Shown: piece after piece, positions 1,681-60,734 of the stretch | Layout: each line of letters starts with the position of its first letter | How positions within the stretch are numbered: position 1 is the first letter of the stretch | NCBI GenBank assembly: GCA_004764695.1 | Contig: SMSO01000025.1 | Span: 930,001-994,000 of the forward strand | Length of the DNA stretch: 64,000 nt | DNA from: Schizochytrium sp. TIO01 | Taxonomy: Eukaryota; Protista; Bigyra: Labyrinthulomycetes | Reading direction: 5' to 3' | Program-made: the position numbers and the translations under genes | The notes under the pieces: model-generated | What the model was told of the DNA's origin: nothing | Seen by the model: only the letters and a program-made list of their open reading frames with translations | Databases searched by the model: none

Positions 1681-4204
1681 AGTAAAAAACCAAAAGTGTG
1701 CATACACTTTCTTTCCTAGAAACAATGGTGGAACCTGAATTGATGGCTAAAGAGACAAGTTAACCTAACCTCATCAATTGTATCTTAAGCAGTTCAAGTA
1801 TGTTGTAGTCTCATAATTACGACATAAAGCAGTCTGCGTCGCAACTAGATTCCAAGAATAGCAGATCTAACTCATAATTTACAGATTATCATGCCTTCTA
1901 AAGTCCCCTTGGAGACTTCATCTACCCACTTGCCTTCACTTTCATAGTCAACCTCTAGCGGACCAGCATCATCTCTCAGCACTTCTTTAATATTGATCAT
2001 ACTCTCCAAGCATCTTGTCTTCATTTCCCCATCGACCTTTGGCCTAATCAGGAATTTAACTTTTAGCAGTTATGTGCAATTTAGAGTTGTCTTAGTCTCT
2101 TTAGTTTATGAAATAAATCAATTCACATTGAAGTTTAATTATTCAGGAGCCACAAATTCCTAATTCTAAAGCCTAAAATTAAAAAGAAACTATTCGAGGT
2201 TAATTTCGAAACTTCAAGCATCTTGGTTCCATCTTGCCGGTTAGCATCCATCTAATCTGGCTTCTTTTCAGTATTGACCATATTATAGTCGGAGTCCTAT
2301 CAAAAGACTGTGAACATTGGTAGGGCATTTTAGCTTTGATTTGAAACCGAGATAAAATAGTAATATCAATAAAACAACACAATATTCGCGTATAACAGAA
2401 AAAAAGGTACAATGCTCTTCAAGAGAGACTCACGAGCGGTCCCTCCCACTTATTCACCTCCAAATTTAGGTGAAAAATAACTTCTCAGTTCCATATAATC
2501 GACAAGATGGTGACGACCACCTTCAGGTTTTAATATTTGAAATGTGTATAAACTACATCACTCATACCATTCACAACCATATCAAAATTTTTAGATAAGG
2601 AATAGTTCGCTTAAGGTTACATTCTTCGTGCAACTATCTGTTTACTTAGCGATTCGCGCAGCCACGCCACTCGTATGCTCCATATTATAACTTGAAGTAG
2701 GAAGTGATGTGGGGAGTCATCTATTCTATTCAAGGCAGAGGAGGAGCATCCTCGATGGTCATAATTTTGACGTAAGAGAATAATACCCTCTTTTAGTCTG
2801 TGTATTTGAAGTGATGAATCAGTTCCATCCAAATGAGGTCACTTCAGAGATTTAAAAGATAAGGTGCTGCAAGTCTTCTTTCTTTGAGCAAATTAAAAAC
2901 AAATTAATCATAGGCATGGACCTGACAAACAAGAGAGACGAGGAGGTTCAGCCTTTACATACTAAGCAATTGTTACTTATAATATTATGCGCAGAATAGT
3001 TATTTTCTCTTAAGTTTGATTACAAGGTAGCAGAGCTTTATCTTCACTTGAGACTTGATGTTTTAAAAGTTGAAATTGTCTATTTGTATGATTAATGAGA
3101 ATAGCAGAACGGAACATAAGACTATCAGGTACCTACTAGACTACTTAACTACCTAAGCATATAATATGCGCTATGTCATTTCGTGATCGAGGGAGCGGCG
3201 ATTTCTACCCAAACTCCGAGATGCAGCTGACTAATTGTGTGTGTGCAGCAATCAGTTTTTGTTTCACTTCGTAAAAACAAATGTGAAATAGCTTATACTT
3301 GGATGTTCCTATCTGGCACAAGCACACAGACATAGACGAAAATTAGTGGTAAGAAGTCAGAAGTATTCTTCACAGACTGCCCCAGCGTATCAGCTACCTG
3401 TATCTCACCATCAGAACCTGTGAAGCTTGAGGTATAGTTGAGGTCGGACAGGGAAAACCACAGTACTTTTATCATGTGGGATTGGTTATATCGATGAATC
3501 GGCGTTCATTATAACTCGACATGAACATTTAAAAACCTTATATTTTTCAGATTGCATTATCTTGAAAGCTAGTAAAGTGTTAGAGTTAGAGCGATGGTTT
3601 GTGAGTTCTCTTATAGTTGCTTGAAAGATTCTAAAGGTAGGTGCTTTTCAATCTGTTGGTGGTGAGGTTTGGAAACCCATGCGAAAGCTAAAAGTTTCCT
3701 TTGTCATGGTGCCAAGGTAGTCACGGTAAAAACGCAGCGAATTGACTTGAGTTTTTCCGCAAGTAAAGTGATTGATAATAGTAAATTCTGACCAGTGCTA
3801 AAAGTATTAGGAGAAAAAAAAGACTGAGGCAACTCCATGTGGAGTCAGTCTTATTAAAGCTTCTTTACATATTTATTTTCACATGATTGTAGCTTGAGTT
3901 GTCAAGAAGTGAAAGGAGTATGCAGCCTGTGACTAGTGGAAGTTCTAGAGATCCTCGAACACTGCATAGGATTCCTGATAGGCCCTACCTACTAGTGTTT
4001 TTTTTTCTTTAAAATCCGAAAAAAATTCGCTGCTTAATATTAGTATAATGGTAAGTGCCCTGGATAGGGTGCCGCGACTGAAACACTATCGGATAACCCT
4101 AGGTAGTTGCTAGTAGGTACTGTCTCTAATGAGCTACTGCTTACTACTATCTATCGTGCGGTCATCCGCCAAAACAAAAACCCAAGATCTAGAAGACCTG
4201 AACA

Positions 4205-5373
4205 ATGCTATCCACCGTGAGCATGCGCGCCTCAATGATGTCCGCCACTCGCTTTGGCCGTATGGCTAGTGCGCGGGCGTTCTCTGCTTCAACCTCTAGC
4301 CAGGCAAGCCAGGGTCGCCGCGTTGGTATGGGAATGGCTGCCATGGGCGCTGTCGGCCTTTTTGGAGTTGCTGCCTCTGCCTCGCAGACTCAGACTGAGC
4401 AGGCTAAAGAGGAATCCAAGGCTGCCCTGTCCCCTAAGGAGTTCCGCAGCTTCAAGGTTCACTCTGTTGAGAGCCTGTCGCACAACACCAAATTTCTCCG
4501 TTTCGAGCTTCCCAGCGATAACCACGAGGCAGGTCTTTCTGTGGCAAGCTGTTTGATGGCTCGTGCTGAGGTTGATGGCAAGGCTGTTATGCGCCCTTAC
4601 ACCCCGGTCTCCACTCGTGATCAGAAGGGCTTCCTTGATCTGGTAAGTTATGCTTTGATTGTCTATGCGCGTGTTAAGATGAAGCACAAATTAAGACCCC
4701 TCGTCCTCTCCTGTACAACACGATGCAAGTTCGAACCCGCATTATGCGTACGACTTGGAGCTTTTACCAAGAAAAAATGATAACTAACCTTGAAGTTTTG
4801 TATCACTTCCGTTCAACCTATCCACAGATTGTGAAGGAGTACCCTGAGCCTGGTGGCGTTATGTCTCGCCACATTTGCTCCCTCAAGCCTGGTGATGAAC
4901 TTGAGATGAAGGGCCCCTTCCCGAAGATTGCTTACAAGAAGAACATGGTCAAGAAGATTGGCATGGTCGCTGGTGGTACTGGTATTACCCCGATGCTTCA
5001 GGTCATTCGCGAGGCTCTCAGTGACCCTGAGGACCAGACCGAGATTAGTCTTATCTTTGCCAACGTCTCTGAGAAGGACATCCTCTGTCGTGATGAGCTT
5101 GAAGCCCTTCAGTACCTCCACCCTTCTTTCAAGGTCTTCTACACTCTGGACAAGCCTCCCTCCAAGTGGAAGGGTGGTGAAGGTTTTGTCTCTGAGGAGA
5201 TGGTTCGCGAGCACCTTCCGAGCGCCAAGGATGATTGCCTCATCCTGGTCTGCGGCCCCAAGGGTCTCATGGACAGTGTATCCGGAAACAAGGCTTCCCG
5301 CACCGAGCAAGGTGAGGTAAGCGGAATCTGCAAGAAGCTTGGATTCACCAAGGAACAGGTGTACAAGTTTTAA
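4205..5373 (+). CDS. NADH-cytochrome b5 reductase, probably mitochondrial (MCR1/CBR2-like); exons 4205-4642 and 4828-5373, 327 aa
   Basis: FAD motif RPYTPVS, GxMS, NADH motif MVAGGTGITPMLQ, LVCGPKG. Arg/Ser/Ala-rich presequence followed by a hydrophobic segment. Phase-0 intron GTAAGT...CACAG at 4643-4827 joins FLDL|IVKEY. Confidence 0.95.
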
Positions 5374-52106: not shown

Positions 52107-55100
52107 ATGTCTCAGGAACCTATTGCAGTAGGAGCAGGACCTCCCCAGAGCCCCGACCTGTTAGCAGACTTGAGCGATGAAGACGATGATCGTGAAGCAG
52201 GCTCTATGAGCGAATCTGAGAGCGACCTAGAGCAGAATCGTAGCCCCAGTCTAGTTGAACAACTTTCGCATTCCGCCACGGCTGAAAAGCATGCTGCCCC
52301 TAGTTCTTGCTCTGATACAACTGGTCAGACTGCCGTCCTCAATAACGGAAAGACAACCATTCTTGACATTACGACATCGCCTAGAGAAAGGCAAGTAGCC
52401 AAATCAAAAGGTCAACCAGAAACCACCCCAGCAGTCAGCAAACGTAAATATTTACCCTCTGCATCGCATCAAACTAGCAGAGCTACTTCAAAGAAACAAA
52501 GTTTGATACCAATGCAAGCGTTACTGATGATCATTCGTCTCATGGCGATGATGACGTTGATGAGGAACAAAATTTGGAGTCAACACACACTGTACAATTT
52601 TGCTATGATTTTGAATTGAGCCAAACCTCGTCTCAAGGGTCGGTTAGCGAAAAGGTATTCCCAGTACGACAGTCACCTTTGGAACGTGCTCGAAGAAAAA
52701 AACTCAAGCATGGGCACTCTATTAGCGTAAATACCGAGGATCAAGTTAGCGATCGCGATGGCTCAAGTCCTTGGTCTTCTATTCAGCAAATTCAGTCTAA
52801 TGAGGTGCTGCTAGATGAGGAGGACATCACAAAGCCAAGATCTAGTAAAGACACTGTATCAGTCCAACGTAGGCCTCAATTAACCCGCCCCAAGTATATT
52901 GAAAAGGAAAATTCGGATTCAAACCTTCTGAGTGATTCTTCTGTAGCATTGTTACACGGTAGAATTGGCAAAGTTACTCCTGGAAAAGAGTTGACCCAAG
53001 ACGTTGCCGAATGCAAAAATCAATACGCACACTCATCTATGAAGTTGCTTTCTACACGCAATCAAAATATTTATCCAAATTTCAGTCAGCAAGCCATAGT
53101 GTCCAGAACAGTTAAAAGCGACGGTTCTACGTCTGTATCGACCATGGTCTCGGAAAATGAGTTAGGGATTGAACTTATTTCAAAACCACATAAGATGAGA
53201 GTTGAGGGTGGTCATGGTCATGGAAGTGGAATGAATACCAAATTACCCGAGCAATCCATATTTCCAGGCAAATCGCATAGGCGACCGGCAGGTGAACACA
53301 AAAACTATTCCTTAGATCTGGATAGATGTAAGGGTGCCCATGGCCAGATCCCAGGCTGTCCCGATCATGAATGTGCTAAACCTTCGTTCCACCCACCTAT
53401 TTCAAACACCATCGTTAGTCTTTTCCAAACCGGGTCTGGTAGAACAATTCAGCTGGACAAATCATCACTGATGGCTGCTCGGGAATCCTTGGGCTCCTTG
53501 CATGCCCAAACTGTTGATGGAGATATAGAGATCAATGACGAATTTTCATTAGGAGAAGCATTCCATAAAACAAATGTGCAAGAGCTAAGCACAATGGACG
53601 AACTGATAGGCGGAAATTCAAAGTATGCCTTAGGTTCTTCATGCGAGGCTCCATCTGTTTGTAGCACAAATAACCCAAGCTTTGCGCTCAAAGGCTACAA
53701 AATACAGGATACTACTGATATTAGTCCTCAAGAACCATCAATGTCGAGTCTGAGTGAAGTCTCTCGTAGTGATGGGAATCTTAACTCTGCTCAGCCGAGC
53801 TCTGTCTCGAGTTTGTTCTCGACAGGGTCTCGCAAGCAAGTGAGCATTAGTGAAGACAGCTTGTCTTCAGCTCAGCGATCTCTTGGGCTTTCCAGTAACA
53901 GTGGCAACGTGAGCTCTGCTCAGTCGAGCTCTGTCCCGAGTTTGTTCTCGACAGGATCTGGCAAGCAAGTGAGCATTAGTGCAGATAGTTTGTCTTCAGC
54001 ACAGCGATCTCTTGGGCTTTCCAGCAATAGTGGCAACACAAGCCCTGCTCAGTCGAGCTCTGTCCCAAGTTTGTTCTCGACAGGATCTGGCAAGCAAGTG
54101 GAAATTAGTGAAGACAGCTTGTCTTCAGCTCAGCGATCTCTTGGGCTTTCCAGTAACAGTGCCAACGTGAGCTCTGGTCAGTCGAGTTCTGTCCCGAGTT
54201 TGTTCTCGACAGGATCTGGCAAGCAAGTGAGCATTAGTGCAGATAGTTTGTCTTCAGCACAGCGATCTCTTGGGCTTTCCAGTAACAGTGCCAACGCGAG
54301 CTCTGTCCCGAGTTTGTTCTCGACAGGATCTGGCAAGCAAGTGAGCATTAGTGAAGACAGCTTGTCTTCAGCTCAGCGATCTCTTGGGCTTTCCAGTAAC
54401 AGTGCCAACGTGAGCTCTGCTCAGTCAAGCTCTGTCCCAAGTTTGTTCTCGACAGGATCTGGCAAGCAAGTGGAAATTAGTGAAGACAGCTTGTCTTCAG
54501 CTCAGCGATCTCTTGGGCTTTCCAGTAACAGTGCCAACGTGAGCTCTGGTCAGTCGAGCTCTGTCCCAAGTTTGTTCTCGACAGGATCTGGCAAGCAAGT
54601 GGAAATTAGTGCAGATAGTTTGTCTTCAGCACAGCGATCTCTTGGGCTTTCCAGTAACAGTGCCAACGCGAGCTCTGTCCCGAGTTTGTTCTCGACAGGA
54701 TCTGGCAAGCAAGTGAGCATTAGTGCAGATAGTTTGTCTTCAGCACAGCGATCTCTTGGGCTTTCCAGTAACAGTGCCAACGCGAGCTCTGCTCAGTCAA
54801 GCTCTGTCCCAAGTTTGTTCTCGACAGGATCTGGCAAGCAAGTGGAAATTAGTGAAGACAGCTTGTCTTCAGCTCAGCGATCTCTTGGGCTTTCCAGTAA
54901 CAGTGCCAACGTGAGCTCTGGTCAGTCGAGTTCTGTCCCGAGTTTGTTCTCGACAGGATCTGGCAAGCAAGTGAGCATTAGTGCAGATAGTTTGTCTTCA
55001 GCACAGCGATCTCTTGGGCTTTCCAGTAACAGTGCCAACGCGAGCTCTGTCCCGAGTTTGTTCTCGACAGGATCTGGCAAGCAAGTGAGCATTAGTGAAG

Positions 55101-58100
55101 ACAGCTTGTCTTCAGCTCAGCGATCTCTTGGGCTTTCCAGTAACAGTGCCAACGCGAGCTCTGTCCCGAGTTTGTTCTCGACAGGATCTGGCAAGCAAGT
55201 GAGCATTAGTGAAGACAGCTTGTCTTCAGCTCAGCGATCTCTTGGGCTTTCCAGTAACAGTGCCAACGCGAGCTCTGTCCCGAGTTTGTTCTCGACAGGA
55301 TCTGGCAAGCAAGTGAGCATTAGTGAAGACAGCTTGTCTTCAGCACAGCGATCTCTTGGGCTTTCCAGTAACAGTGCCAACGTGAGCTCTGGTCAGTCGA
55401 GCTCTGTCCCAAGTTTGTTCTCGACAGGATCTGGCAAGCAAGTGGAAATTAGTGAAGACAGCTTGTCTTCAGCACAGCGAGCTCTTGGGCTTTCCAGTAA
55501 CAGTGCCAACGCGAGCTCTGTCCCAAGTTTGTTCTCGACAGGGTCTGGCAAGCAAATGGAAATTAGTGAAGACAGCTTATCTTCAGCACAGCGAGTACTA
55601 GAACATGCTACCCTATCTGCTGAAAGTTCTCAGTTCAAGTCACCTGCGCGTTTGGAAGGCGCATCTATACACAAGAAGTTTTCTGCTCAACAGCCTGCTA
55701 TTGCTTCGAATGTCTCTACTCCAATACGTCCCCGTGGACGTTTACCTGAACTGCGCGTTAAGTCAGCCACCTCCAGTGATACAAGACGTCCTAAACGTCC
55801 ACGTGCCTTTGTAACGCCGTTTAAAAGTGGCGGCAGTGCGCAAAAGCTAATCAAGAGGTCTGCAGCAAGTGCACCACCAAAGTTTAGTACTGCGATTGGT
55901 TCGACTTCAAAAAGTGGTCCACCCGATAAACCAACTTTAGGAATAGCAGATGCCGTTGCTCGTTGTTCTAGGTCGAGTCTAAGCAAAGTTGCCGGTTTTA
56001 TTTTTTCACAACAGAGCTCATCAGAAATGATTTGTGAGAGCGCTATAGAGCTTGGGACGCCGAAGTGGCTCCTTGCTATCAACAGTGAGAGTGCTGCGTG
56101 CGTTCGATTCTCTCCCGATAATGGACAACTTCTAGGAGTAGCACCATTCCCCTCATCTGAAGGAACTTATGATTTGGCACGTCAACGTCTTCTTGAGGTC
56201 GATGGTGTTGACGAAGAACTTGCAACAGATATCTGGACAGCAAACCATTATCGATGGATTGTTTGGAAGTTGGCATCATTCCAGCGTGTTCTTGGCTCCG
56301 CTTCATCTAATCTCGCGAGAGCTTGTACCCTCGAAAATGTTGTTTTCGAGCTTCAATATAGATATGACAGGGAGCTTTTGAAAGTTGAAAGGCCTGCACT
56401 ACGAAAAATCTTTGAAAAAGACGCGCCTGTTTCGAGACATATTGTTCTTTGTGTAGCATCAGTTGCAAAACCTGGACTTGGTTTTAATCTCGTGATGACA
56501 GACGGTTGGTATTCTATTCAGGTTATTGTTGACAACTTTCTACAGCGCTTAATTGCGAAGAAGAAAATAACTATTGGAACCAAAATCCACATTTGTGGAG
56601 CTGCGATGATAAACAATGAAGAAGGTATTGGACCCCTCGAAACAGTGACGAATAACCTCCTCCTGCCGAAGGACCAAAAGGCCCGTTTAGAACCTCGCTT
56701 GCGTCTGTCGCAGAATTGTACGTTTCCGGCAAAATGGGACACAAAATTAGGCTTCCGTCCAGAAATTATTCTTTATAAACAGCTCAAAAATATCCAGCCG
56801 TCATGGGGGACTACCGTACCGGGGTTGCGCGCTATTGTTGTACGACATTTTGAAACGCAATACTGTGAACGGGACGCTAATGGTCGCTGGATAAATCGAA
56901 ATGCTCAAGAAGAGGACCTAGCTCGTAGATCCTATGAGGACCGTGTCTCTCAAGCACGAGATGCAATCGTTGCAGAACATGAACGATCATGGGAAGACCT
57001 ATCACAGGGTTCCGGGGGATCTTCGCAGCTGAAAACTCGCGCTGCATTAATGCAGAGAAGACGTGATTCGGTGTCTAATGCACTCGCTGAAGATCCTCGA
57101 ATGCCTACCCGAAGAGAGGTTAAAACAAAATTACGAATCCTGTTACAACAACCAGGAGATGATTGCTTTGCAGAGCTTGTGATGTGGAACCCACCTCAAG
57201 AGTTTGGACGTATGTATCCCGAAGGATGCTATATTGAGCTTAATGCAATCACTGTTGTGCGACCATCGGTTGCTAACATTCCTCGTACCATTGGGTTGAA
57301 CACATCGAAAGAAACTCGTTTCAGGCCTTTAGTCAACATGCACGCAAAAGCTGGCAATGTTCGAATGCGGATAGTGCAACGTATCGAAGATCTTTGCAAA
57401 GTAGATCACAACAACAGCAACCCGTTTGCAGATGTTTATGGGGTTTTAGTCTTTAAGACGGATTATCATGCATTTTTATGCAGTGAGAGCGGCCCAGAAG
57501 ATATCATGTCTATTCGGCTTGGCCCAAAGTCACTTCTTTTAGATGATACAATTGTCTTTGGGGCTCTGATTTGTGTAAGAGATTTATTGGTGCAGCTGCG
57601 CGAGCCATCAACAGATGTCCTTGCGTGTACAGAAACCCACCATACCATTTTAGTAGCAAACCCCTCGAAGACGCTTCTGGATGAAGCTCGTTGGCAGCCC
57701 TTTGCTAATGCTGTTGGACAGTTTCAAAAGTTTCTTCTGGCAGATGAAGCTGTTGAGATTTTGAAAAGCGCAAGAGAACGTGCTGAGCGTATAACTATGG
57801 GCAAAGCCCTGAGTACCAACCAAAATCATCACACGCCTGTTAAATCAGCTGAACACTTATCGACCTCGTCTAGCTCAAAGTCAACAGGAGAGTTGCATTC
57901 CCACGCTCCACAGGCCAGAAATTCTGCTGCCAAGTCTACTATCCTTCAGAGCTCTGTCCAAGCCCCTGCAGAAGATCCGAAACGAATTCAGCGACTTCGT
58001 CTTCAGCAAGAAAAACAGGCGCAATGGAGAGAAAAATATCTTTCGAGAAAGGCTGCACAAGGTCTCGCAGTTGCTCCCACTTCACCGAATCGTTTGGCGT

Positions 58101-58579
58101 CTCAGAAACACCATACTCCAAAGGAATTAGGGTCTAAAGATTCAACTGGGACGCGTAACACATTATCTGGGTCGAAATCATTGACTCTCTTTGCCCGAAG
58201 CACGGACCTCTCTCATGTAATGGTAGGCCGCAAAACCGTCGATATTCGGAAGGCAACTCAACAAATTCAAAATCTTCGAATGGGTGACCTCATAAGTTTT
58301 ACGGACTCACATCAGAGGCAAATAGTTCGTGTAAAAGCTGCAATTCCATACGACAATGTATGTAGTGCCCTAGAGCACGAACCTCTGTCTCGATTGTTCC
58401 CACGTATTTCGTCAAGAGAGGATGCGCAGATATTGCTGAGCCAGCATATCTCGTTGAGTGACGCAGTTTATTCTCTACACTTCGAAATTCCGAACGATGA
58501 GATCAATATGCCAGGATGGGCTACCCCCTCTCCGAACACCAAATCTCGTTCTCGTTTGCAGAACCAGCAATCTTCATAA
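52107..58579 (+). CDS. BRCA2: BRCA2 homologue (16 BRC-like repeats, helical/OB DNA-binding domain, C-terminal ASCH-like domain); apparent -1 indel at ~52498
   Basis: BRC-like FSTGSGKQVSIS..SL..A...L; WTANHYRWIVWKLAS; LQYRYDREL..RPALRKIFEKD; IVLCV; MTDGWYSI; AKWDTKLGF. The upstream ORF 52107 joins as SKKQ(K)FDTN if one A is added. Confidence 0.95.
53785..55595 (+). repeat. Coding tandem array of 15 BRC-like repeats (129-bp and 114-bp units)
   Basis: 15 occurrences of SLFSTGS[GR]KQ. Eight long and six short periods sum to 1716 bp between the first and last copies. Confidence 0.97.
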
Positions 58580-58980
58580 TCAGATCAAAATCTTCTATTT
58601 GCATCATATCAGGAGGCATAGCAAAACTTAATGATTAACTCTTGTAGTATTTAGGATTGGAAATTATTCCTCCTCCTCCTCGTAAAGTTTCATGAGACTG
58701 ATGATATGCGACCCTAAGCAAATCATCCAAAGATAGAACTTCCAGCACAAATTTAATAGATCAAGTCAATACATGCAAACCATTGCCGCTCCAGGAACCG
58801 ACGTAGTCTTCATTTCCTGTCTCGTTGTTGGCATCTGCTACTATGATCTCCAAAATAGAGAATAGCTCTTATTAGTATCTAATCTGTAAAATTCGCAAAA
58901 CTTGTATTTCCTATGTTGACAAAGTGGGACCCACGACCAAAAGGTACTTTTTCGAATAATACCCTTGGATAGTAGCACCA

Positions 58981-59660
58981 AAGGATGCCTCTGACGGCGT
59001 GGATATCACGGTCGGCTACATTCTTGCATTTGGAGGATTTGAAAAGCTTGGATTTTCGGAGCTTGTTATGGATGATACCACATTCATTGCATATTTTCGA
59101 AATACAATCCTCTTGATAAATTACAAATCTGCACTAGAGGAAAGAGCAGCAATGTGAGTGAGCGCTTGATGGAGTATAAAGTGACCCCAACGACACGTCA
59201 TTCGAACTGTCTTGCTATCGATCTGTCTTGTATACTTGTTCGAATACCAAGCTTTGTCTGAGCGGCCAATGCCTCGTTTTTAGTAGGACCAACATCAAAA
59301 ACTCTGAATTATCAACAATTCCTAAATCTCTCACAGCTTGTCGTTCCTCAAGAACTCAGACAGGTGCGTCCATCTTTTCTTAAAGGTGCACTACTTTTTC
59401 CCTTTATAGCTATCACAAAGTATTGTAGGATTGCCCTTTTCGTCTTTCAAGACTTGCTTCGTTTTTTAGTCTTTCCTTATGCGTGCACCTTGATGCAGAG
59501 CCACAAGTTCGTCTTTACCTTTGGACAAGTCATAATGAAAGGCAACACCAATGTTGTATGCTCTCCTAGTAATGCTAAACCATTTTTTTAAGTTGAGTGT
59601 GCTGATCTGTCGTTAGACACGAACCTTTCTAGGACAAACTAGTATCTCCTCTTTCTTGGT
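58981..59660 (-). pseudogene. tnpB: TnpB/Fanzor2 RNA-guided nuclease pseudogene, internally deleted
   Basis: N-terminal RKVRV/LTTDQHTQLKKWFSITRRAYNIGV; ELLIIQSFDV; RQIDSKTVRMTCRWGHFILHQAL; QEDCISKICNECGIIHNKLRKSKLFKSSKCKNVADRDIHAVRGIL (Glu ahead of the zinc ribbon, then RuvC-III DRD). Confidence 0.88.
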
Positions 59661-59664
59661 TGTG

Positions 59665-60278
59665 TTACGTGCCGTCACACGCGCTCTTTTCTTTCTCGCT
59701 GCGCCTCCACCATCTTTTTTGCGCTGCCAGTTTTCCATGATGCGACGCCACAAACACGGTGATGGTGCCAAGGGGGTCTTTTGTGGAGTCCCCGGCGTGT
59801 GCATCTTGGCCATGTCACGAGTTTGACATTTTTCCTTTCAAGAAGGTGCTTATGGATGTCGACGGCGATTCGCGGTAGTCGATATTCGTGCAGGACCGAT
59901 GATTCCACTGGCGTCACAAGTGCCCACCCAGTAGGGTACGCAAACCCGGCGTTTTGAAGATGGACGTGCTACCGATGTTGTTGTAGACGGCTATGGCGCC
60001 TGGATAGGTACGCTGAACATCGACAACCTGGCGTTTGAAATCCTATTTTAGCTTGGCAGAGGACAATCTGGTTTAGATAAGGGCTGCGTTGCTCACGTAG
60101 CTGCCGGAACCGCAGCTACAGATGGCCCCATATATGAGTATATGTAACTGCCTCCGGGGAGGAACCAAAGGCCACTTGCTGAGACACCAAACTTTCAGTT
60201 GGAGTACTTTCCTGGCTCATATGGAAGGTTTATTTCACTTGTTGTGTCTGGAGCTTGTTGGTTCCTTTGCCATGCCAT
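59665..60278 (-). pseudogene. tnpA: IS607-type TnpA serine recombinase pseudogene
   Basis: MerR-like HTH remnant KFGVSASGLW..LPGGSYIY; catalytic region I*TRLSSAKLK*DFKRQVVDVQRTYPGAIAVYNNIGSTSIFKTPGLRTLL at 60078-~59930 (cf. IYARVSS..QK.DL.RQ...YP....DIGSG.NF.R.GL..LL); VLHEYRLPRIAVDI...NVKLV (cf. DRL.R); C-terminal helix DPLGTITVFVASHHGKLAA. Confidence 0.88.
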
Positions 60279-60606
60279 TTTCTTACCTAGCCTCTTAACA
60301 AACTTGAAGACCTTAATTATTATTTTTTAATCTTATTTTCTTAATCTTTAAAAACATAATAAAAAATTTAAAAGTAAAAACGTAGAGAAGATACAAATGC
60401 TTCTCTTTTTTCTTTTCTTTTTTTCAAAATAAACAAACGGGGCAGGTTCCAATTTGCCAAATAAACCTAGTATCAAATCTGGCGGATTAACACCATTTTG
60501 TTAGCCGACAATAATTAATCCCTTCTATGATTCATATTCTAGGAATTTACTATACGTTTAGGTAGGAAAAACTAAGTGGGAAAAAAAAAGGGGAGAGGGA
60601 AATAAG

Positions 60607-60640: not shown

Positions 60641-60734
60641 TGCAGAGTACGGGGTTCGAACCCGCGAGGCTCTCGCCATCGCATTTGCATAAGGTGCTTA
60701 AGTGCGACTCCTTAGACCACTCGGACAACCCTGC
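60641..60734 (-). tRNA. tRNA-Leu(TAA) with a 12-nt intron (60685-60696)
   Basis: Acceptor stem GCAGGGT/ACTCTGC-A; D-arm TCCGAGTGGTCTAAGGA; anticodon stem TCGCA/TGCGA with loop CT-TAA-G^A; long variable arm; T-loop GGTTCGAACCC; intron at the canonical 37/38 position. Confidence 0.95.

Follow-up and report, generated by a model that had tools for sequence, protein, structure and literature searches.

The described elements closest to the locus reported here combine a TnpA serine recombinase with a nuclease of the TnpB/Fanzor2 type. In those of Bao & Jurka 2013 (ACa-1 and ACa-2 of Acanthamoeba castellanii, CRv-1, ISvAR158_1 and ISvNY2A_1), the tnpA serine recombinase gene is followed by Fanzor2 (PMC3627910). 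ApmFz2, listed as "TnpB-like protein L79" (PDB 9b0l) and carried by the ISvMimi IS607 elements of Acanthamoeba polyphaga mimivirus, performs RNA-guided cutting with a GGG transposon-adjacent motif (PMC11832414, PMC10530073). The fingerprint of Fanzor proteins is a DPG motif plus an alternative Glu six residues before the first CxxC (Yoon et al., PMC10711439), and the cyanobacterial "pro-Fanzors" carry it as well (Yoon et al. 2023). The literature that we searched contained nothing linking thraustochytrids to Fanzor, TnpB or IS607.

We analyzed a window of 64,000 nucleotides from the thraustochytrid Schizochytrium sp. TIO01 (contig SMSO01000025.1, positions 930,001 to 994,000). As judged from its sequence, the stretch from about 60392 to 58866 on the minus strand is almost certainly a decayed, non-functional fossil of an IS607-type element carrying Fanzor2 (Table 1). 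The initial annotation had reported such an element at 58981-60278; it does lie there, and its real extent is slightly larger. All the minus-strand peptides quoted at that stage were recovered by three-frame translation of window 58850-60320: the HTH peptide KFGVSASGLWFLPGG, the resolvase core I*TRLSSAK and DFKRQ..YP..IGS..PGLRTLL, then HEYRLPR and TITVFVASHHGK, and on the TnpB/Fanzor side RKVRV, LKKWFSITRRAYN, SKTVRMTCRWGHF..HQAL and EDCISKICNECG...ADRDIHAVRGIL. At the DNA level, an intact copy from elsewhere in the genome (L009) aligned to the window in two blocks, 2754-3687 to window 60294-59428 (67% identity over 942 nt, E 2e-92) and 4481-4754 to window 59213-58948 (72% identity over 274 nt, E 7e-35). 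The homology of the window copy, its anatomy, its decay and its intact relatives are direct observations.

Table 1. Features of the fossil element, in window coordinates
Feature	Positions	Strand	Basis
Entire fossil IS607-Fanzor2 element	58866..60392	-	~1.53 kb versus 2.2 kb intact; DNA alignment to L009:2656-4860; left boundary approximate
Left-end non-coding remnant	60279..60392	-	MAFFT alignment of left ends (window, seven old fossils, two young copies)
tnpA pseudogene, IS607-type serine recombinase	59650..60278	-	tblastn with intact TnpA (45% identity, E 7e-33); frame map
TnpA nucleophile (catalytic) Ser codon	60061..60063	-	Intact VIYARVSSAKQ aligned to window ALI*TRLSSAK
Fanzor2/TnpB core, N-terminal part (HTH_OrfB/WED/REC)	59245..59642	-	Residues ~230-378 of the intact 662-codon frame
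Internal deletion junction, approximate	59244..59250	-	~0.5 kb lost; 793 nt of L009 (3688-4480) versus 214 nt in the window
Fanzor2/TnpB C-terminal part	58972..59243	-	PF07282, E 1.5e-5; IS607_TnpB, E 1.5e-4; tblastn 50-55% identity, E 2e-19
Right-end 3' non-coding remnant, presumed omega-RNA scaffold	58866..58971	-	Alignment with 10 young and 4 old copies; RNAalifold

Pfam searches of ten stop-free pieces of the window returned nothing relevant for nine of them, and the TnpA pieces individually remained unmatched. The 84-aa C-terminal piece (window 58882-59133) matched both PF07282, the Cas12f1-like TNB profile covering the TnpB zinc-ribbon/RuvC-III region, at 25.5 bits, below the 26.3 cut-off, and NCBIfam IS607_TnpB (E-values in Table 1). 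A six-frame genome scan with PF07282 scored the locus at 23.4 bits, and a genome-wide scan with PF00239 (Resolvase) did not pick it up. The tBLASTn and HMM searches proposed in the initial annotation were borne out in part, by tblastn and by the PF07282 match near its cut-off, and failed for TnpA at the profile level; the TnpA call rests on the intact relatives, not on a generic profile.

The tnpA pseudogene starts with the ATG at 60278 and keeps the catalytic core and a MerR-like HTH, the latter with an 11-aa deletion. Its reading is interrupted by at least three frameshifts and by four in-frame stops (60197-60195, 60075-60073, 60045-60043 and 59667-59665), the second of them three codons upstream of the retained nucleophile Ser of the YARVSS motif. 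Alignment to the intact in-genome TnpA confirmed the codon that had been named as catalytic. Two stretches of the Fanzor frame are recognizable, one bounded by PRKVRV (about 59642) and GPTKNEALAAQ (about 59250), the other by SNKYTRQIDSKTVRM (59243) and RGIL (58972). The N-terminal core contains several stops and frameshifts; an intact Fanzor frame used as tblastn query recovered it over residues 71-327 of that query (48.7% identity, E 1e-57), with an additional match at GPTKNEALAAQ. The ~0.5-kb deletion takes out residues ~380-555, including the Asp of the RuvC-I DPG (residue 460), and it arose in the window copy, as other old fossils retain ~480 nt more at this place. Preserved in the C-terminal part are the alternative Glu of RuvC-II (codon 59112-59110, sequence QEDCISKICNEC), the first zinc-finger CxxC (Cys codons 59091-59089 and 59082-59080, the second Cys pair being degenerate) and the RuvC-III RD motif (Asp at 59007-59005).

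Both ends of the window copy are decayed. The right end closes with ...AATAAGAG (...AAGAG) at 58866; ~26-32 nt are missing from its hairpin region. Between the old and the young subfamilies, the ~110-nt 3' non-coding region as such is conserved, and it shows predicted hairpins and a few compensatory changes. The left remnant is alignable only over ~60279-60330, the remainder being AT-rich and decayed, and its end at ~60390 was placed by length analogy with intact copies, in which 114 nt lead from the left end to the tnpA ATG. The copy had been described as dead from the beginning, and the stops, the frameshifts and the ~0.5-kb deletion agree with that description. With these lesions, and with the RuvC-I catalytic Asp and part of the right-end RNA scaffold lost, the window copy can neither move nor cut.

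Intact copies had been predicted to exist elsewhere in the genome, and a search of the 64-Mb assembly (37 contigs) found them. Of the 52 matches in the six-frame scan with PF07282, 17 fell in open frames of 615-682 aa (~55 bits); the scan with PF00239 gave 33, of which 12 were stop-free with an open frame of 233-243 aa. The suggested reconstruction of a consensus is unnecessary, as natural intact copies exist. The young family consists of a 2.2-kb element (L009:2656-4860) with 94-99% identity between loci and unrelated flanks (18 copies retrieved); young copies number about twenty in the genome, and in several of them both genes are intact. The intact TnpA (L009:2770-3468, 232 aa) matched PF00239 with 72 bits and NF033518, "IS607 family transposase," with 144.9 bits (cut-off 110). 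Its closest solved structures are catalytic domains of IS607-family TnpA (6dgc, 3ilx and 6dgb, ~E 1e-18), gamma-delta resolvase following at 1e-3.

The nuclease is encoded by a 662-codon open frame (L009 2762-4747) with HTH_OrfB_IS605, a weak OrfB_IS605 and Cas12f1-like_TNB matches (PF12323 and PF07282) and a guided_TnpB match of 94.4 bits over residues 242-654. Its DPG at residue 460 (ALDPGVR) is invariant in the alignment of relatives, and an alternative Glu at 608 stands six residues ahead of CNEC (E-x6-CxxC) in a stretch reading QESYTSKTCNEC. The zinc finger has the form CxxC-x14-Cx4C-x4-DRD, and a strict CxxC...CxxC regular expression fails solely on the Cx4C spacing. By sequence, the best match among solved structures is the mimivirus Fanzor2 9b0l (E 2.5e-18). 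A Foldseek search with an AlphaFold2 model, built from a 12-row alignment and with pLDDT of 70-90 in the core, placed 9b0l first (E 9.8e-17) and the ISDra2 TnpB second, with the Fanzor1 SpuFz at E 1e-6. Further relatives, P0002-P0008, are 39-46% identical.

These features support the assignment of the intact relatives to the IS607 family on sequence grounds: a MerR-like HTH and serine recombinase TnpA, with tnpA upstream of tnpB on the same strand. The order tnpA to tnpB on one strand is the same in the window fossil, and the order of HTH, serine-recombinase core and TnpB/Fanzor read from it earlier is that of the intact copies passing NF033518. Similarly, the DPG, the alternative Glu, a zinc finger followed by RD, the eukaryotic genome and the greater closeness to TnpB and ApmFz2 than to Fanzor1 support a classification of the intact nuclease as a putative Fanzor2. 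The two hallmarks on which the initial annotation had based its Fanzor2 call, the Glu before the zinc ribbon and the IS607 TnpA partner, hold in the intact copies. Fanzor1 was considered and rejected: the partner is an IS607 TnpA, terminal inverted repeats and target duplications are lacking, and the fold matches to Fanzor1 are weak.

The thraustochytrid element shares with ApmFz2 the DPG and alternative-Glu active site, an N-terminal extension before the (K/R)(V/I)R(V/I)YPT strand, the IS607 TnpA partner and a 3' RNA scaffold, here presumed. It differs in that the protein is only ~19% identical over the fold alignment, has ~235 rather than ~130 residues ahead of the core and forms its second zinc-finger pair as Cx4C; the element ends in AG, whereas ApmFz2 has the GGG transposon-adjacent motif (PMC11832414), and the window copy itself, unlike ApmFz2, is a pseudogene. 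In common with the elements of Bao & Jurka 2013 are the gene order, the lack of terminal inverted repeats and target duplications, the motif D...[TS][TS]xx-C4-...RD and a multicopy presence in a protist nucleus (PMC3627910), the host being here a labyrinthulomycete thraustochytrid and the N-terminal extension long. As in bacterial IS607/ISXfa1 TnpB elements, TnpA is an NF033518 equivalog, the nuclease core matches guided_TnpB and an RNA scaffold is presumed at the right end; the DPG and alternative-Glu fingerprint is also that of the pro-Fanzors. In contrast to bacterial IS607 elements and pro-Fanzors, the host is eukaryotic with nuclear copies, the N-terminal extension has a basic NLS-like tract, and both genes appear to lie on one ~2.2-kb transcript.

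The junctions of 17 young copies, all with unrelated flanks, show a right end ...CTAAGAG and a left flank (A)CAG, giving AG at both junctions. A repeat search and a comparison of junctions found no terminal inverted repeats or target duplications in the young copies. From at least 17 copies of 94-99% identity at different loci, we infer TnpA-catalyzed excision and integration. On the left side, (A)CAG precedes the conserved left-end body by 2-5 nt (L010-L026), and the nucleotides between them vary even among near-identical copies (GA, TAAGA, TAGGG, ATGGA). Two of the 17 young copies lie head-to-head with an old fossil, ~0-60 nt from its left end (L023, ~2425-2570; L016, ~2580-2702; oriented coordinates), and in L020 the first 11 nt past the right end repeat the element's own left tip (AAGAAACAAAT). 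These arrangements suggest an insertion preference for end-like sequences. Separately, L013, L015, L018 and L026 have a common 295-bp insert with telomere-like (CCTAA)n repeats in tnpA codon 28 (after the equivalent of L009:2851). This subfamily comprises at least four copies, with a tnpA stop as well in L013 at the least; it retains an open Fanzor frame of 632-665 aa and was presumably mobilized in trans.

On balance, we lean towards the ~235-residue N-terminal extension of Fanzor2 being translated in the +1 frame over the full length of tnpA, such that both proteins are dual-coded and produced from one mRNA by leaky scanning. The +1 frame is open over the whole of tnpA in L009:2762-3468 and in two divergent giant-virus loci, L059:3983-4644 and L058:3748-4449, which hold relatives of 30-34% protein identity. 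It contains no stops where 1.6-5 are expected (P of 0.005, 0.0016 and 0.14 for the three loci by codon shuffling), and the other four frames over tnpA have 3-10 stops. Across the young copies, substitutions shared by lineages affect 15 of the 696 overlap sites, against 112 of the 1,279 sites of the Fanzor-only part, a four-fold lower frequency in the overlap; the third positions of tnpA are likewise depleted of them (8/232 versus 49/427); singleton changes after insertion are equal (4.2% in the overlap and 4.0% in the Fanzor-only part). The next AUG in any frame after that of tnpA (aagaaaATGG) is the AUG of the Fanzor frame, 124 nt downstream. As judged from the open frames, the overlap arrangement is kept from the thraustochytrid nuclear copies to the giant-virus copies.

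The extension matches 123 representative clusters (50% identity), mostly at the N terminus of proteins of 550-780 aa. Between lineages, however, the similarity in the +1 frame is only 12-20 bits above that of the non-coding +2 control frame, and we consider the protein-level conservation of the extension to be mostly a by-product of the constraint on TnpA, as the +1 frame barely exceeds this control. A folded domain was considered for the extension and rejected, residues 1-238 of the AlphaFold2 model being mostly disordered, with pLDDT mostly below 50. The extension may include a basic "thumb"-like tract and a conserved LW..ITENEQRK helix, the latter possibly corresponding to RuvC-R of ApmFz2. 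According to the ApmFz2 structure paper, the N-terminal extension of that protein is functional and comprises NLS, RuvC-R and thumb, but the paper is silent on tnpA or an overlap; we found no description of a tnpA/Fanzor2 overlap in the Fanzor papers searched.

There is evidence that the young family is expressed: MMETSP transcripts contain complete ORFs of 601 and 617 aa at 92% identity. A 2176-nt contig of depth ~595, from a run guessed to be RNA, comes from a relative, since it shares just 42 conserved nt with the window. Over the fossil itself, runs guessed to be RNA give contig patches of 3-6x, versus ~77x on the BRCA2-like gene, and a weak read-through transcription of the fossil is possible.

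Compared with all relatives in the genome, the window copy has a DNA identity of 67-76%, none being above 76%. A tree built on the 5' 870 nt groups it with seven other fossils in a star-like cluster and sets the young family apart in a tight one. The terminal branches of the fossil cluster measure 0.15-0.20 substitutions per site (~0.2 for the window copy) and the internal ones are very short. Such a shape, with its long terminal and short internal branches, points to an old burst and subsequent neutral decay; the window copy would be one of at least eight fossils of that burst. About 51 kb before the start of the window, the contig carries a further old fossil of this family (G000:C24:878108-878882), which matches the 5' part of tnpA and the Fanzor C terminus. 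The broken copy of the window also occurs in 15 or more public runs, which come from 10 studies and carry several organism labels, with ~99% identity where contigs span it (run X12). In the contigs of run X12, the fossil has 0.8% differing sites, the adjacent non-coding DNA 1.4% and the BRCA2-like coding sequence 0.13%. The fossil shows no sign of constraint, given that its between-strain divergence resembles that of non-coding DNA and is far above that of BRCA2-like coding sequence.

This divergence also bears on whether the fossil has been exapted, its right end serving as the 3' end or terminator of the BRCA2-like mRNA or as the source of a regulatory RNA. In two runs guessed to be RNA, BRCA2-like contigs end at 58893-58896, ~30 nt inside the right end of the fossil, as such a role would have it. 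Contigs cannot define transcript ends, however, the RNA status of the runs is a guess, and the hairpins of the right end are partly deleted; with the fossil diverging between strains as non-coding DNA does, we consider exaptation highly unlikely. That the locus is instead a fragment of an endogenized giant-virus genome has a close to negligible probability: relatives with a protein identity of 30-34% occur on giant-virus contigs (L057-L059, beside a capsid-like gene), one named homologue takes its annotation from chlorovirus A625R and IS607/Fanzor2 elements are common in giant viruses, but the similarity is confined to the 2.2-kb element, starting and stopping at its ends, the flanks are host genes (BRCA2-like, tRNA and GT2) with no adjoining viral genes, and the family, with ~50 copies dispersed among unrelated flanks, behaves as transposons do.

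The wider neighborhood in the window is likewise eukaryotic, with genes for BRCA2 OB/helical domains, ZPR1, a GPN-type ATP_bind_1 protein and SYO1, the ZPR1 being 79% identical to that of the thraustochytrid Hondaea fermentalgiana. The BRCA2-like ORF (window 52574-58579, plus strand, 2,001 codons) has ~15 near-identical BRC-like repeats and BRCA2 helical and OB1 domains; the gene adjoins the right end of the fossil, directly downstream. About 250 bp upstream of the left end and in the same orientation as the fossil is an intron-containing tRNA gene (window 60641-60734, minus strand; Rfam 42.7 bits) with a 15-nt insert after the anticodon and a long variable arm, probably a tRNA-Leu UAA, which was found by Rfam and missed by ARAGORN in bacterial mode. 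The copies L023, L025 and L051 also have tRNA genes within 70-360 bp, which hints at tRNA-proximal insertion or survival of element copies.

The reading that we prefer is that of a cellular transposon copy. The ancestral element would have encoded two proteins, a serine-recombinase TnpA and a Fanzor2 (eukaryotic TnpB) nuclease. From what is known of the family, TnpA would act by serine recombination at a short core, excising the element and re-inserting it with neither terminal inverted repeats nor target duplications. By analogy with characterized TnpB and Fanzor2 proteins, Fanzor2 would be guided by an RNA from the right end and the adjacent flank, and the Fanzor2-RNA complex would, as in ApmFz2 and TnpB, cut sites with a motif adjoining the left end. 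The window copy would have inserted, in the ancient burst, between the BRCA2-like gene and the tRNA gene of a thraustochytrid, and would since have accumulated ~0.2 substitutions per site, stops, frameshifts, the ~0.5-kb deletion and the deletion in the right-end scaffold.

The fossil is ordinary genome debris, and its value is that of a marker. It indicates an ancient arrival of IS607/Fanzor2 elements in the thraustochytrid lineage, in a burst whose copies have each drifted since by ~0.15-0.2 substitutions per site, and the family is still active today. The natural intact copies may provide RNA-guided nucleases that are compact and native to a eukaryotic host, in a group of oleaginous protists that are important in biotechnology. 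The element family is also a clean case for the question of dual coding of a transposase and a guide-RNA nuclease.
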